DNA of 64,000 bases from Epiperipatus broadwayi. Its lineage: Eukaryota; Animalia; Onychophora. A program made the position numbers and the translations under genes. Of this stretch, positions 7,396 through 43,603 are shown in pieces. The first letter of the stretch is position 1. Every line of letters starts with the position of its first letter. The stretch covers positions 27,776,001-27,840,000 of the forward strand of contig JAQFVV010000003.1 in the NCBI GenBank assembly GCA_028023455.1, given 5' to 3'. The notes under the pieces are model-generated. The model had not been told where the DNA came from. It saw only the letters and a list, made by a program, of their open reading frames with translations, and searched no databases.

Positions 7396-9175
7396 ATGGA
7401 TAAATGGTTGAACTTGAATACCAAAGGTAATGATGCAGATGACAATGCTACAAAGTCTCCAAGCAGGATCTCGTAATCGGAAAGAGGCATTTAAGATGAA
7501 AAAAAAAAAAATGATGAGACATTTCACCAATTTGGCTTTACTTTCAATAACTGTGATAGTAATGAACAACCTCTTTGTTTAATTTGCAATAATGTTTTGT
7601 CTATGGAGAGTATGAAACCATCAAAATTAAAAAGACATCTTGAATCCAAGCATCCTTCATATGTCAATAAACCAAAAGAATATTTTGAATGACTGTTAAC
7701 TTCAAATAAAGAAAAACAATATTTTGAGAAAATTATAACTGTTAATGAAAAATATTTACTAGCATTATATGAAGTTTCATATCTGATTGTTAAAAATAAA
7801 AAGCTATACACCATTGGAGAAGATCTTATATTACTTGCTGCTATTAAAATGGTCGAAATACTTCACGGAAGTAAATATGGTGATGAAATTTGGAAAATTC
7901 ATTTCTGAAATTAGCAATGATCAAGAAAACCCAATATTTATAATTCAGTTGGACAAAACAACTGATATTTCAAAAATAGCCCAATTATTAGTGTATGTCA
8001 GATATATTTATAAAGAAAACATTGAGGAAGAATTGTTAATTTGTCATTCTTTGGAAGAACGTACAAGAGAGAAAGACATATATAATATAGTAGACAAATT
8101 TTTTAAAACTGAAGGTTTAGAATGGAAAAATTGCTTTGGAGTATGCATAAATGGTGCAAAAGCAATGACTGGTGAAAATATTGGTTTTAAATCATTTGTC
8201 AAAGCTTCTGGTAATAATCATGTAACTTTTACACACTGCCTGATACATCGAGAGGCCCTTGCAGCAAAAAAATTAGCAACGGAATTGAACGATGTGCTTC
8301 AGGATGCTAAAAAAAATTATAAACTTTATTAAAAGCCATGCGCTTAACAGCCATTTATTTTCAAATCTTTGTAAAGACATGGATTCTGAATACAAAAATT
8401 TATTATTACATGCAGAAGTAAGATGGATGTCAAGAGAGTGAAGTTTAAGAAGATTATTGTTATTAAAAGAAGAAATTATTGTATTTTTAACCGAACAAAA
8501 ATCTAATCTTGCTGCTCTTTTTCAAAATGACTTGATATTTTTGAGAAACTAAATGATCTTAACTTGTCTCTTCAAGGGAAAAATAGCAATATTTTTACTT
8601 CAAATGATAAAATTGAAGGTTTTATTAAAAAGATCAACATTTGGAAGAATAAGGTGGAAAATGATTCATTGGAAATGTTTTTGACTATTGATAATTTGAT
8701 AATTGAAAAAATAATTGTATTGCAAAAATTATTATAGATCACTTAAAACTCAGAAACACAGTTTTGCAAATATTTTATATCATATTTAGATTTCAAAAAG
8801 TTATCTCGGATTCATAGACCATTTTTGATTGACATTAATGAGATTAATCACCTGCCATATAAAGTCCAAGAAGAATTTGTTGAGTTATCAAGTGACTCAA
8901 ACTTAAAACTTGACTTTCCACAAAAATACTTGACTGAATTCTGGATCGGAGCTAGGACTGAATTTCCCACAATTTCTGAAATGACATTAAATGTTCTTCT
9001 GCCATTCAGCATCACATACTTATGTGAAATGACTTTTTCAGCTTTAATGTATATTAAATCCAAATATCGTTCAATGCTGAAAAACATTGAAGATGCTTTA
9101 CCTCCAGCAGTATCAAATATTTCACCAAGATTTAATTTGTTATGCAGCAAAAAACAAGCACATCCGTCTCATTAA
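7396..9175 (+). pseudogene. Frameshifted Buster/Charlie transposase (ZBED5/ZBED8-like family)
   Basis: BED finger PLCLICNNVLSMESMKPSKLKRHLESKH; IQLDKTTD; HCLIHREALAAK; LLPFSITYLCEMTFS; C-terminus KQAHPSH*. Multiple stops and frameshifts. Possible 5'UTR intron 7201-7375 (gt...ag). Confidence 0.88.
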
Positions 9176-14450: not shown

Positions 14451-14683
14451 ACACAGAGGCTAAACTCTCCATACAGTAGCACCCCTAAGGGCAAGCCACA
14501 GTAATCAATGCATGCAAGAAGATTTGTGCATAAAAACCCCATCTAATACTACTCATCCAATATCACTGGACTAGTTTCTAGCTTGTGGCTTTCATCAGTA
14601 AGGAGCACAAACCTTCTTGCATCCATTGATTACTCTGGCTTGCACTTAGTGGTACTATTATATGAAGAGTTTAGTCTCTGTAT
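14451..14683. mobile_element. MITE-like element with ~80-bp inverted arms
   Basis: 14451-14529 (acacagaggctaaactctcc...gatttgtgc) is an imperfect reverse complement of 14605-14683, with a ~75-bp spacer. It lies next to a (TA)n tract. Confidence 0.8.
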
Positions 14684-15203: not shown

Positions 15204-15558
15204 TTACGGTTTTTTCTTCTTTAAAGTAGTATAAACATTCATATAACTTTTCTGTGCACTGTTTAACTTTATAGAAGCGTTCACGATCATTATTATTGGA
15301 ATAATAAGCCAAAATGAATTCATAATAATAAAATACCCCCAAAAATAAATAGGATGCCACATAATACCATGTATAAAATTGTCTTCATATTCTGTAAGAA
15401 AGTACAGACAGTCACCATATAGTTGTCCAGAAGAAACTAATAGCTGAAGAACATAAGCATATGGTTTATTCGCCAGAAATGCTGCAACAGTGAGAAAGCA
15501 TGCAGGTCCTTCTACAAAAGCCGTGAATGTTTCTACCATGATGATGAATGAGTCAGAA
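15204..15558 (-). CDS. EBP: Terminal coding exon of EBP (3-beta-hydroxysteroid delta8-delta7 isomerase / emopamil-binding protein)
   Basis: SDSFIIMVETFTAFVEGP...QLLVSSGQLYGDCLYFLTE...HPIYFWGYFIIMNSFWLIIP matches the EBP C-terminal half; equivalents of human E122, N193 and W196 are kept. Acceptor polypyrimidine+AG at 15560-15559; exon starts 1 nt before the Ser codon. Confidence 0.95.
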
Positions 15559-18640: not shown

Positions 18641-19372
18641 AAAACAAATACTGTTCACTGACCACCAACAATTACTGGATTGTAGCAGCTATCCAGAAAA
18701 AAATCTTTAATTTCTACTGAAAGTTAGGAGCATGGGATTCACTTTAGAGTTACATCGAATGTGCACAATATATATTTTAATTTGATGAAATCAATACAAT
18801 ATACAAGTTCATTTGTCACTCAACTGAGGGTTTTTTTTAATATTAAAACCTTATTTGATGGCATAACATAAATATAAGTTTCAATTCCATTTACAATTGC
18901 ATAGAATTAATATAAAAAATGAAGTAAACATATATACATAACAGTAGTTAATCACATCGTTTTCCAAATTAAAACCATATACATATTCAGAAAATCTATT
19001 CATTCATTTTACATCTCCAATCCTGCAATCATATGATTTTACAATAGCAGATCTAAGAGCACTACATTCAGAAAGCAGATCATGTCAACTGACCTTATGA
19101 TCTTGGAATCTTACTTTTAAATATGTTATATAAATAAAATTATTAATAAAAACAATAAGAATAAATTAAAGATAAAAAAGAAATATAATAAATGGTATTT
19201 GTTGAATAAAATGTATTTGATATAAAATTAATACACACATAAAAAAAAAAAAATTTATAATAACATTTAAGTAAAATTAAGAGCATGCTAATAGCTCTAA
19301 ACAAGCTTTTTTTTTTTATTTATGATAAATGCTACTACAAGAGAAGGCATTCAAATCATTTTCATCTTGGAT

Positions 19373-19430
19373 TGTCCCCATCCCCAGACCGGTTTCGAGC
19401 TATGGGTCTCTTCAGTGAGGAGTTGGGATA
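19373..19430 (-). ncRNA. Type I hammerhead ribozyme, copy 1 (stem II mismatch variant)
   Basis: CUGAAGA and GAAAC..GUC core intact; stem II reads GACC-CAUA-GCUC, giving a C-C mismatch. Confidence 0.75.
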
Positions 19431-19796
19431 TTAGATCTAAAAAACCAACTCAAGCAAAGCATTTATCTAAAAGATAATTGTTAGAAGAAGATCTGAAACT
19501 TTTAGACATCTACATGTCTTTAAAGTCAGCTCTCCAACTGAAAAAATCATATAGGCCTGAACTTAATTCAGATACTCCATATATTAGTAGGCTTAGCTCT
19601 TTAATTTAGCTAAAGCCACAACAACAAAATAATAATAGTAATAATAACAAGTCAGATGTCACATGACTTATATATAGCTTGTACTTACAAATATGTAAAA
19701 TTAAGAGCATGCTAATAGCTCTAAACAAGCTTTTTTTTTTTATTTATGATAAATGCTACTACAAGAGAAGGCATTCAAATCATTTTTATCTTGGAT

Positions 19797-19854
19797 TGTC
19801 CCCATCCCCAGACCGGTTTCGACCTATGGGTCTCTTCAGTGAGGAGTTGGGACA
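19797..19854 (-). ncRNA. Type I hammerhead ribozyme, copy 2
   Basis: Reverse complement of UGUCCCAACUCCUCA-CUGAAGA-GACCCAUAGGUC-GAAACCGGUC/UGGGGAUGGGGACA on the plus strand. Confidence 0.88.
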
Positions 19855-20218
19855 TTAGATCTAAAAAACCAACTCAAGCAAAGCATTTATCTAAAAGATA
19901 ATTGTTAGAAGATCTGAAACTTTTAGACATCTACATGTCTTTAAAGTCAGCTCTCCAACTGAAAAAATCATATAGACCTGAACTTAATTCAGATACTCCA
20001 TATATTAGTAGGCTTAGCTCTTTAATTTAGCTAAAGCCACAACAACAAAATAATAATAGTAATAATAACAAGTCAGATGTCACATGACTTATATATAGCT
20101 TGCACTTACAAATATGTAAAATTAAGAGCATGCTAATAGCTCTAAACAAGCTTTTTTTTTTTTATTTATGATAAATGCTACTACAAGAGAAGGCATTCAA
20201 ATCATTTTTATCTTGGAT

Positions 20219-20276
20219 TGTCCCCATCCCCAGACCGGTTTCGACCTATGGGTCTCTTCAGTGAGGAGTTGGGACA
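20219..20276 (-). ncRNA. Type I hammerhead ribozyme, copy 3
   Basis: Same intact motif as copy 2. Confidence 0.88.
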
Positions 20277-20640
20277 TTAGATCTAAAAAACCAACTCAAG
20301 CAAAGCATTTATCTAAAAGATAATTGTTAGAAGAAGATCTGAAACTTTTAGACATCTACATGTCTTTAAAGTCAGCTCTCCAACTGAAAAAATCATATAG
20401 GCCTGAACTTAATTCAGATACTCCATATATTAGTAGGCTTAGCTCTTTAATTTAGCTAAAGCCACAACAGCAAAATAATAATAGTAATAATAACAAATCA
20501 GATGTCACATGACTTATATATAGCTTGCACTTACAAATATGTAAAATTAAGAGCATGCTAATAGCTCTAAACAAGCTTTTTTTTTATTTATGATAAATGC
20601 TACTACAAGAGAAAGCATTCAAATCATTTTTATCTTGGAT

Positions 20641-20698
20641 TGTCCCCATCCCCAGACCGGTTTCGACCTATGGGTCTCTTCAGTGAGGAGTTGGGACA
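20641..20698 (-). ncRNA. Type I hammerhead ribozyme, copy 4
   Basis: Same intact motif as copy 2. Confidence 0.88.
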
Positions 20699-21075
20699 TT
20701 AGATCTAAAAAAACAACTCAAGCAAAGCATTTATCTAAAAGATAATTGTTAGAAGAAGATCTGAAACTTTTAGACATCTACATGTCTTTAAAGTCAGCTC
20801 TCAAACTGAAAAAATCATATAGGCCTGAACTTAATTCAGATACTCCATATATTAGTAGGCTTAGCTCTTTAAATTATTTTGCTGTTGTGGCTTTAGCTAA
20901 ATTAAAGAGCTAAGCCTACTAATATATTGAGTATCTGAATTAAGTTCAGACCTATATGATTTTTTCAGTTGGAGAGCTGACTTTAAAGACATGTAGATGT
21001 CTAAAAGTTTCAGATCTTCTTCTAACAATTATCTTTTAGATAAATGCTTTGCTTGAGTTGGTTTTTTAGATCTAA

Positions 21076-21133
21076 TGTCCCAACTCCTCACTGAAGAGAC
21101 CCATAGGTCGAAACCGGTCTGGGGATGGGGACA
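21076..21133 (+). ncRNA. Type I hammerhead ribozyme, copy 5
   Basis: CTGAAGA at 21091; stem II GACC/GGTC; GAAA at 21110; predicted cleavage after GUC at 21119; stem I CUCCUCA/UGGGGA plus distal UGUCCC/GGGACA. Confidence 0.9.
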
Positions 21134-21496
21134 ATCCAAGATAAAAATGATTTGAATGCCTTCTCTTGTAGTAGCATTTATCATAAATAAAAAATAAAGC
21201 TTGTTTAGAGCTATTAGCATGCTCTTAATTTTACATATTTGTAAGTGCAAGCTATATATGTCATGTGACATCTGACTTGTTATTATTACTATTATTATTT
21301 TGCTGTTGTGGCTTTAGCTAAATTAAAGAGCTAAGCCTACTAATATATGGAGTATCTGAATTAAGTTCAGGCCTATATGATTTTTTCAGTTGGAGAGCTG
21401 ACTTTAAAGACATGTAGATGTCTAAAAGTTTCAGATCTTCTTCTAACAATTATCTTTTAGATAAATGCTTTGCTTGAGTTGGTTTTTTAGATCTAA

Positions 21497-21548
21497 TGTC
21501 CCAACTCCTCACTGAAGAGACCCATAGGTCGAAACCGGTCTGGGGACA
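21497..21548 (+). ncRNA. Type I hammerhead ribozyme, copy 6 (one TGGGGA repeat of stem I lost)
   Basis: Core intact, cleavage site at 21540; 3' strand is TGGGGACA only. Confidence 0.8.
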
Positions 21549-21915
21549 ATCCAAGATAAAAATGATTTGAATGCCTTCTCTTGTAGTAGCATTTATCATA
21601 AATAAAAAAAAAAAGCTTGTTTAGAGCTATTAGCATGCTCTTAATTTTACATATTTGTAAGTGCAAGCTATATATAAGTCATGTGACATCTGACTTGTTA
21701 TTATTACTATTATTATTTTGCTGTTGTGGCTTTAGCTAAATTAAAGAGCTAAGCCTACTAATATATGGAGTATCTGAATTAAGTTCAGGCCTATATGATT
21801 TTTTCAGTTGGAGAGCTGACTTTAAAGACATGTAGATGTCTAAAAGTTTCAGATCTTCTTCTAACAATTATCTTTTAGATAAATGCTTTGCTTCAGTTGG
21901 TTTTTTTAGATCTAA

Positions 21916-21973
21916 TGTCCCAACTCCTCACTGAAGAGACCCATAGGTCGAAACCGGTCTGGGGATGGGGACA
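21916..21973 (+). ncRNA. Type I hammerhead ribozyme, copy 7
   Basis: Intact motif; cleavage site at 21959. Confidence 0.9.
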
Positions 21974-22344
21974 ATCCAAGATAAAAATGATTTGAATGCC
22001 TTCTCTTGTAGTAGCATTTATCATAAATAAAAAAAAAAAAAAAGCTTGTTTAGAGCTATTAGCATGCTCTTAATTTTACATATTTGTAAGTGCAAGCTAT
22101 ATATAAGTCATGTGACATCTGACTTGTTATTATTACTATTATTATTTTGCTGTTGTGGCTTTAGCTAAATTAAAGAGCTAAGCCTACTAATATATGGAGT
22201 ATCTGAATTAAGTTCAGGCCTATATGATTTTTTCAGTTGGAGAGCTGACTTTAAAGACATGTAGATGTCTAAAAGTTTCAGATCTTCTTCTAACAATTAT
22301 CTTTTAGATAAATGCTTTGCTTCAGTTGGTTTTTTTAGATCTAA

Positions 22345-22402
22345 TGTCCCAACTCCTCACTGAAGAGACCCATAGGTCGAAACCGGTCTGGGGATGGGGA
22401 CA
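22345..22402 (+). ncRNA. Type I hammerhead ribozyme, copy 8
   Basis: Intact motif; cleavage site at 22388. Confidence 0.9.
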
Positions 22403-22771
22403 ATCCAAGATAAAAATGATTTGAATGCCTTCTCTTGTAGTAGCATTTATCATAAAATAAAAAAAAAAAAAGCTTGTTTAGAGCTATTAGCATGCTCTTA
22501 ATTTTACATATTTGTAAGTTCAAGCTATATATAAGTCATGTGACATCTGACTTGTTATTATTACTATTATTATTTTGCTGTTGTGGCTTTAGCTAAATTA
22601 AAGAGCTAAGCCTACTAATATATGGAGTATCTGAATTAAGTTCAGGCCTATATGATTTTTTCAGTTGGAGAGCTGACTTTAAAGACATGTAGATGTCTAA
22701 AAGTTTCAGATCTTCTTCTAACAATTATCTTTTAGATAAATGCTTTGCTTGAGTTGGTTTTTTAGATCTAA

Positions 22772-22829
22772 TGTCCCAACTCCTCACTGAAGAGACCCAT
22801 AGCTCGAAACCGATCTGGGGATGGGGACA
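22772..22829 (+). ncRNA. Type I hammerhead ribozyme, copy 9 (degenerate)
   Basis: Stem II GACC/GCTC mismatch and GAAACCGATC (G16.2 to A), probably impaired. Confidence 0.7.
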
Positions 22830-23193
22830 ATCGAAGATAAAAATGATTTGAATGCCTTCTCTTGTAGTAGCATTTATCATAAATAAAAAAAAAGCTTGTT
22901 TAGAGCTATTAGCATGCTCTTAATTTTACATATTTGTAAGCGCAAGCTATATATAAGTCATGTGACATCTGACTTGTTATTATTACTATAACATTTAAGG
23001 AAAATAAATATGGGAAAAAAATTCTATTAATAAACATACAAAAAACACAGCATACATATATTTATTAAGTGATATTAAAATATTTTATTAAAAATAAAAC
23101 AGAAAGAAAAATAAAGAAATGCCACATAAAAAATTAAAATAAAAATCCAGAATAAAATTATTAATGTTTAATTAATTATTAATATATATATAC

Positions 23194-43129: not shown

Positions 43130-43603
43130 ACATACTTCGTGCTAAATCAACACTCATCAGTTGGTCCAGATCATTATCTCCCACACATAAATAATCAGTT
43201 CTTGGTTTATATTAAGACAGCAAATCTTCACACTTTAATGGATAGACTGAATCCACTCCAACCTTCAACTCTTCAGCCATCCTTAACACTGATAATCTGA
43301 TGATGGCATGAGCACATCCTGTGATAATATCAATATTATTGCCATGCCCACATTCACTTATAAGTCATTCTGACCCCTCTGTGTAAGACCTTGTCGGTTC
43401 AAATACACAGGAGAGGAATTGGCATTTATCAGATTTTCAATGGAATGGATGGCTGAAGAGATCAAGGATGGAGTGGATTAAGCCTGACCATTAAAGTGGC
43501 AAGATCTGATATCTTAATATAAATGAAGCACTGATTATATATATATATATATGTGGAAGATGACAATCTGGAACAACAGATGAGTGCTGGTCAGCATGAA
43601 ATA
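43130..43603. repeat. Diverged foldback: ~150-bp inverted arms with ~165-bp spacer
   Basis: 43130-43282 is an imperfect reverse complement of 43447-43603 (ggatggctgaagag...gagtggatt...ccattaaagtg...gatgagtg). Confidence 0.7.

Follow-up and report, generated by a model that had tools for sequence, protein, structure and literature searches.

The DNA analysed here, called the window in what follows, is a stretch of 64,000 nucleotides from the onychophoran Epiperipatus broadwayi (GenBank assembly GCA_028023455.1, contig JAQFVV010000003.1, positions 27,776,001 to 27,840,000 of the forward strand); positions without further specification are those of the window. Between 19271 and 22989 it carries an insertion that is built from tandem units of about 422 nt with a hammerhead ribozyme motif in each. 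We read it as one young insertion of a non-autonomous, non-coding metazoan retrozyme of the kind that lacks long terminal repeats (non-LTR retrozyme), and would give this reading a probability of roughly 0.8.

The insertion is not a simple tandem array. An initial annotation, made from the sequence alone, had described one array of about 8.8 units. Tandem Repeats Finder, an inverted-repeat scan and alignment all reveal two arrays in opposite orientation instead, which meet head-to-head. Tandem Repeats Finder returned 19271-20876 (period 422, 3.8 copies) and 20873-22989 (period 429, 5.0 copies), and in the inverted-repeat scan the two arms turned out to be mutual reverse complements (98-99%). 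In ribozyme sense, the two arms run away from each other, with their 5' ends meeting at 20872/20873 and their 3' ends bordering on the flanks. Monomer positions are counted downstream of the predicted cleavage site; on this scale, the minus-strand arm is truncated at ~203 at the centre and the plus-strand arm at ~178. Because of these different truncations, a perfect snap-back or perfect palindrome is excluded. The whole insertion is bracketed by a target-site duplication (TSD), AACATTTAAG, of 10 bp, or 12 bp if two ambiguous bases are included (Table 1).

Other statements of the initial annotation fared better. Nine copies of the hammerhead core are located where it had placed them, as seen in both the Rfam and the motif scan. 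When the arms are cut at the predicted cleavage sites, unit lengths of 419-429 nt are obtained within each arm (~422 nt being typical), which is the spacing it had predicted, and the few differences it had noted between units correspond to an identity of 97-99% within the stretch. It had also called the monomer non-coding, and the longest open reading frame (ORF) in the insertion indeed comprises only 80 amino acids.

The right flank is unique over ~190 nt only. A search with these ~190 unique nt found no paralogous empty site for the insertion. From 23183 onward, this flank runs into another dispersed repeat, for which at least 416 first-look candidates with 82-92% identity were counted. Matches to microRNA-like Rfam families at 20821-20953 were rejected as artefacts of the palindromic junction.

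Table 1. Features of the insertion and of its immediate borders (window coordinates; scores refer to Rfam models)
Feature	Position	Strand	Remarks
Left target-site duplication copy	19260..19271		ATAACATTTAAG; 10 bases (AACATTTAAG) certain, first two ambiguous with the element end; read directly and by script
Minus-strand arm	19271..20872	-	3.8 monomers, 4 hammerheads; 3' end outward at monomer ~119 ('short' end); 5'-truncated at ~203
Outermost minus-arm hammerhead	19381..19421	-	stem II G-to-C breaks one pair; predicted cleavage after 19387; RF00163 20.5 bits
Intact hammerhead	19805..19845	-	predicted cleavage after 19811; RF00163 31 bits
Intact hammerhead	20227..20267	-	predicted cleavage after 20233; RF00163 31 bits
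Intact hammerhead	20649..20689	-	predicted cleavage after 20655; RF00163 31 bits
Head-to-head junction	20869..20877		at most 4 nt ambiguous
Plus-strand arm	20873..22989	+	5.0 monomers, 5 hammerheads; 3' end outward at ~176 ('long' end, with ~60-nt tail)
Intact hammerhead	21085..21125	+	predicted cleavage after 21119; RF00163 31 bits; RF02275 32 bits over 21073-21142
Intact hammerhead core	21506..21546	+	predicted cleavage after 21540; next unit without one UGGGGA repeat in the 3' strand of stem I
Intact hammerhead	21925..21965	+	predicted cleavage after 21959; Rfam and motif scans
Intact hammerhead	22354..22394	+	predicted cleavage after 22388; Rfam and motif scans
Outermost plus-arm hammerhead, mutated	22781..22821	+	stem II G-to-C as in the outermost minus copy; CCGGUC to CCGAUC (GUC to AUC); RF00163 16.1 bits
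Right target-site duplication copy	22988..22999		ATAACATTTAAG; read directly and by script

The hammerhead motif

The motif comprises the full hammerhead core, CUGAAGA - GACC/CAUA/GGUC - GAAA - C CG G - UC. Stem I is made up of UCCUCA/UGGGGA and UGUCCC/GGGACA, stem II of GACC-CAUA-GGUC, and the cleavage triplet is GUC; in all of this the initial annotation was right. It had, however, ascribed the full core to every copy, which is correct for seven of the nine but not for the outermost copy of each arm: both of these are mutated in stem II, and the one in the plus arm also in the triplet. The G-to-C exchange in stem II is absent from 96 other copies examined. Its mirrored occurrence in the two outermost copies could reflect inheritance from one template or conversion from arm to arm. 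The unit 21541-21959 lacks one UGGGGA repeat of stem I.

The hammerhead type I assignment of the initial annotation is recovered by the Rfam model RF00163 (Hammerhead_1, clan CL00010) in seven copies, with 31.0 bits and E = 7e-5, yet below the gathering cutoff of 34 bits. Four other copies of the family in the genome score 35.4-40.2 bits and lie above it. RF02275 (HH9) aligns end to end at 21073-21142 with 32 bits, as against a cutoff of 52. In the latter alignment, stem I falls into two helices of 6 bp each on either side of an internal loop, stem II has 4 bp and the loop CAUA, the full core CUGAAGA...GAAA is present, and helix III, ACC/GGU, has no loop. It is the missing loop of helix III that keeps the Rfam score under the cutoff.

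Helix III can close in two ways only, with 2 bp and no loop, or between two molecules as a palindrome of 6 bp; ACCGGU can pair with itself, and the duplex has an energy of -8.3 kcal/mol. The predicted architecture of helix III is that of a 'dimer-type' minimal hammerhead. Since the palindrome is self-complementary and has no loop, a productive fold is expected only when two copies pair, and the ribozyme would operate in the dimer mode, as expected in multimeric transcripts. Extensive pairing is predicted for the unit RNA, both in linear (-111.6 kcal/mol, z = -4.4) and in circular form (-107.1 kcal/mol, z = -3.9). The minimum-energy folds of single or double hammerhead segments reproduced neither the ribozyme core nor the intermolecular helix III and are not informative here. 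A hammerhead-like string at 14569-14598 (minus strand) was dropped, because it has no pairable stem I.

A dispersed family and its insertion footprint

Related copies are abundant in the genome, which has a size of 5.6 Gb. The exact 29-nt core occurs 4,953 times, the reversed control not once (0). Two of four stem I haplotypes were counted together with the core: with the proximal stem I in its C-G haplotype there are 4,183 exact occurrences, with the U-A haplotype 4. For comparison with the window, 24 other loci were fetched, and the family majority sequences served only as a coordinate ruler. The units in these loci are 95-99% identical, and the GC content of the family is about 0.28-0.31. 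Apart from the window, at least nine loci have TSDs of 10-16 bp (e.g., 11, 11, 16, 10, 11, 11 and 13 bp); the insertion targets are often (TA)n or (ATT)n tracts. Hammerhead mutations in the dispersed copies are mostly found at two CpGs. At one further locus (L066, G000:C12779:569600-571600), an older foldback insertion of the same family sits in an (ATT)n tract and has itself been tandemly duplicated along with the microsatellite (92% identity). The family is also present in public contigs of uncertain type from two organisms, with many short variants, flank junctions and two opposite-strand joints. A text search of the literature for the ribozyme sequence yielded no paper.

The insertions obey strict rules. 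All 17 mixed-strand clusters among the listed exact-core places are head-to-head (minus, then plus), and so are all 20 two-armed insertions at the fetched loci, which adds up to 37 out of 37; the tail-to-tail order was never seen in either set. The 3' ends of the arms (n = 48) are similarly constrained: 25 fall at monomer positions 170-193, 18 at 112-132 and five elsewhere, the two intervals together making up 11% of the unit and corresponding to fixed places at ~119 and ~178. Each of the 20 two-armed insertions combines an arm that stops at 170-193 with one that stops at 112-132 or further upstream, which leaves a tail of ~60 nt. If the ends were independent of each other, exactly one long end in 20 of 20 insertions would have a chance of about 1e-6. 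The long end sits within a UUAUUAUUACUAUUAUUAUUUU tract; the short end sits in a hairpin-forming block, which is more strongly conserved between sister families than any other part outside the ribozyme. The central 5' ends of the arms are scattered round the unit, and none of the 48 arms starts within 3 nt of the cleavage site, where a 5' end would have indicated cutting in vivo. An arm may span as many as 7 or more complete units, with no coding sequence between them.

Such a layout has been described before. Insertions of Penelope-like elements (PLE) show partial tandems, an adjacent inverted and 5'-truncated copy, a tail of 30-40 bp at one end only and a bias towards (TA)n (Craig et al. 2021, PMC8557442; for PLE insertion structure see also Evgen'ev & Arkhipova 2005). 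The layout of the insertions matches this published footprint: partial tandems, the adjacent inverted 5'-truncated copy, the extension at one end and the preference for microsatellites of the (TA)n type are common to both. The initial annotation had guessed at a Penelope-type mobilisation, a guess that is strengthened by the head-to-head arms, the one-sided tail and the TSD. Unlike PLEs, the element in the window has no ORF, its tail measures ~60 nt versus 30-40 bp, and it has no sequence in common with the PLEs sampled.

The corresponding machinery is plentiful in the same genome. A GIY-YIG model yielded 10,242 first-look candidates, of which 150 were scored; all 150 exceeded the cutoff, and many of the candidates are arranged in head-to-head pairs. 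One locus (L068, G000:C12394:20942000-20951999) contains two tandem, apparently intact Penelope ORFs of 901 amino acids with a period of 3135, preceded by an inverted truncated copy. This intact PLE is laid out like the insertions of the window family. Its 901-aa ORF, scanned in pieces against Pfam, matches RVT_1 (45.1 bits) and, C-terminally thereof, GIY-YIG (39.7 bits); Pfam scans of whole PLE ORFs remained blank, the domains being matched only in separate pieces.

A sister family, here called B, was detected on other contigs (L072-L091 and L071:5500-5830). It comprises at least 1,552 first-look candidates, has a period of ~419 nt and shares the foldback layout of the window family as well as its two 3'-end classes, here at 163-193 and 99-105. 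Across the ribozyme module the two families are ~72% identical. Family B keeps the proximal stem I; its distal stem I is replaced by a different helix of 9 bp versus 6, the third pair of stem II is changed from C-G to G-C, and the helix III palindrome from ACCGGU to ACCAAUUGGU (10 nt, with a 4-nt insertion). Natural copies, once aligned, show 99.4% pairing in stem I, as against 36-63% with a slid partner strand, and four pairs are changed on both sides. That the helices have been kept between the families by compensatory change appears supported, on the basis of few independent events that all go in one direction. A monomer-like match upstream of the ORF at L071 was considered as a PLE partner and rejected; it is an independent copy of family B. 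About 4 kb before the start of the window (L065:521-1399) there is a tandem repeat with a period of 392 that is 71% similar to a non-ribozyme part of family B.

Template, mobilisation and rival explanations

The homogeneity of the units bears on the template. Divergence amounts to 1.15% within an arm and to 1.11% between the opposite arms of one insertion, but to 2.41% between insertions at different loci. Every unit of either arm has the diagnostic variants, e.g., at L024, L015, L021 and L023, and the variants within arrays comprise 88 singletons versus 12 sites common to some units. The sequences thereby support the view that each insertion probably is a single event from a homogeneous template. 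For a variant to be fixed in all units of an insertion that has several of them, the sequence must have passed through a bottleneck of one unit and expanded again; the lack of arm 5' ends at the cleavage site implies a template without a processed 5' end there. For these two reasons a circular template is favoured. Rolling reverse transcription round a unit-length circle would be the simplest source of the fixed variants, and multi-unit arms would also be best explained by rolling round a circular monomer.

The life cycle of the element may be envisaged as follows. The array would be transcribed, and paired hammerheads would cut after GUC and thereby free unit-length RNA, which a host tRNA ligase would circularise; self-cleavage, unit-length RNA and a circle of ~424 nt are what membership in the class would lead one to expect. 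The reverse transcriptase/GIY-YIG endonuclease of a PLE would then use this RNA as the template for copying at a staggered nick, in most cases within AT-rich or microsatellite sequence. As the insertions in the genome show, copying starts at either of two fixed AU-rich places, ~119 and ~178 nt past the cleavage site, one for each arm. It passes several unit lengths; the two complementary DNAs (cDNAs) end at scattered positions and are joined head-to-head, and a target duplication of 10-16 bp is left behind. A mobilisation of this retrozyme by Penelope-type enzymes appears well supported at the DNA level. More tentatively, the family may record the integration mechanism of PLEs themselves: rolling-circle reverse transcription of one circular unit RNA with two coupled primings, one on each strand of the staggered break, at fixed AU-rich sites 60 nt apart. 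One of these start sites lies in the hairpin that is conserved between the sister families. Coupled rolling-circle priming would account for arms that are invariably head-to-head, for a tail on one side only and for units that become homogeneous again at each jump.

A number of observations weigh against a self-cleaving, Penelope-mobilised retrozyme with a circular template. At the gathering cutoff, the Rfam scan of the window returned no match; the motif surfaces only below it. CpG decay dominates in the dispersed hammerheads, which implies that individual copies are not under selection and drift neutrally after insertion. The pattern in the public contigs fits genomic DNA as well as RNA. In at least 1,552 candidate copies, family B has U for the conserved A9 of the core (CUGAGGU), and its spread with U9 raises doubt that mobility requires cleavage; either U9 is tolerated or cleavage may be dispensable for spread. 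None of 35 PLE loci (30 with GIY-YIG and five with ORFs of 800-901 amino acids and their flanks) has any sequence in common with the monomer, a negative that is weak because 35 loci are a tiny sample of more than 10,000 candidates. Finally, five consecutive units at L022:681-3363 (G000:C6477) follow the pattern P-Q-R-P-Q at 7 sites, i.e., a three-unit higher-order repeat, and in the window three variants are each common to only two units. A single monomeric circle predicts neither of the two without later events at the DNA level. Either a trimeric template or the duplication of a block at a later time could have produced the P-Q-R-P-Q pattern itself.

The L022 pattern and the two-unit variants of the window make an uncleaved linear multimer a serious rival as template, even if we consider it rather doubtful. 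The element and its Penelope-type insertion would be the same, but the hammerhead would be a passenger, and there would be no circle. Fixed 3' ends of the arms are what a defined RNA 3' end would produce; the rare G-to-C exchange, seen in both outermost hammerheads and in none of 96 others, fits two copies of one heterogeneous template, and family B has spread despite its U9 core. Craig et al. suggest that hammerheads may simply parasitise PLEs (PMC8557442). A linear multimer, however, has to cope with variants private to an insertion or subfamily that occur in all units of both arms, for which a recurrent single-unit bottleneck and re-expansion would be needed that such a template does not provide. 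Moreover, only one of the three shared variants of the window is mirrored between the arms, and compensatory change preserves the helices between the families.

There are two further explanations. The stretch might be the terminal repeat (the pseudo-LTR, pLTR, or the 3' end) of an autonomous PLE that lost its coding part by 5' truncation. Heavy 5' truncation is typical of PLE insertions, which share the tandem and inverted layout, and published work relates retrozymes to PLE pLTRs. This origin is nevertheless improbable in view of the number of complete units per arm, up to 7 or more, without coding sequence between them, of 5' ends that are scattered round the unit and of the 35 sampled PLE loci, which share nothing with the monomer. 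Still harder to believe is an ordinary satellite or segmental palindrome, arisen by unequal crossing-over or replication fork reversal, with the hammerhead as a dead relic. Unequal exchange can of course enlarge tandem arrays, and adjacent units with common variants (M2/M3 and P2/P3) suggest that some local duplication took place later. A satellite, though, would hardly account for thousands of dispersed copies with TSDs, for arms that are always head-to-head and never tail-to-tail, for fixed outer ends with a strict long/short pairing, or for the imperfect palindrome at the centre.

Relation to known elements and neighbouring features

The family is an additional member of the published class of metazoan non-LTR retrozymes (Cervera & de la Pena 2020, PMC7229834; Li, Clavereau & Pollet 2026, preprint, 10.64898/2026.07.22.740005), not a new class, and the class assignment of the initial annotation holds. 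All class characteristics that can be judged from sequence are present: non-coding tandem units of 150-450 bp (here AT-rich and of ~422 bp) that each contain a type I hammerhead, the absence of an LTR, a primer-binding site (PBS) and a polypurine tract (PPT), a low GC content, TSDs of more than 4 bp, dispersed copies in the thousands and the co-occurrence with PLEs. A highly paired predicted unit RNA is likewise shared. The ~422-nt unit is at the upper end of the reported RNAs of 170-400 nt. The head-to-head arms and the one-sided tail, which are the rule here, are not mentioned in the texts of PMC7229834 and 10.64898/2026.07.22.740005.

In its helix III, a palindrome of A-U and C-G pairs without a loop that is too short to close alone, the motif resembles the retrozyme hammerheads of newt and axolotl and the dimer-type hammerheads of PLEs. 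Two motifs of the dimer type can form one long helix III, and those of the axolotl cut well only as dimers. The window motif differs from this type in that its stem I is long and consists of two parts around an internal loop, like that of canonical type I hammerheads. Plant LTR retrozymes, too, are non-autonomous retroelements, whose RNA is cut by hammerheads and then circularised. They have type III hammerheads in LTRs, PBS and PPT, TSDs of 4 bp and a Gypsy-type mobilisation, none of which is found here. The insertion also recalls the twin priming of L1, in which two cDNAs are made from both strands of one staggered break and joined in opposite orientation within one TSD. Here, however, the inversion is the rule, priming takes place at two fixed sites within the RNA, and the arms comprise several units.

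The link between animal retrozymes and PLEs has so far been derived mainly from similar ribozymes, co-occurrence and phylogeny. The present family is very young, has about 5,000 intact copies and carries the full signature of a Penelope-type integration. The rules it follows are exceptionally regular: the arms are always head-to-head, copying starts at two fixed sites, and each insertion has exactly one long end. How PLE insertions are primed and resolved has been named an open problem in the PLE literature (PMC8557442); a short, non-coding, high-copy natural substrate lends itself to studying how the Penelope reverse transcriptase and endonuclease accomplish these steps. The family also offers two natural motifs suitable for cleavage assays, a hammerhead of the dimer type and its sister motif, in which core position 9 is U.

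The surroundings of the insertion may be mentioned briefly. About 2.5 kb before the start of the window (L065:2084-2493), a presumed copy of the window family was rejected, as BLAST did not match it to the monomer and Rfam detected no hammerhead in it; the element there is another one, which contains a tRNA-like stretch and, on the minus strand, the string CUGAUGA...GAAA. An ORF fragment at 15204-15539 (minus strand), about 3.7 kb from the insertion, contains an EXPERA/EBP domain (Pfam PF05241, 64 bits) and is probably an exon of a host gene. The 181-aa ORF at 7787-8332 (plus strand) has a weak match to DUF4371 (23.6 bits, below the cutoff) and probably is a transposase relic. At 43246-43483, finally, a long hairpin-like stretch matches a microRNA precursor far below the threshold (42.5 versus 230 bits); it may be another foldback insertion.

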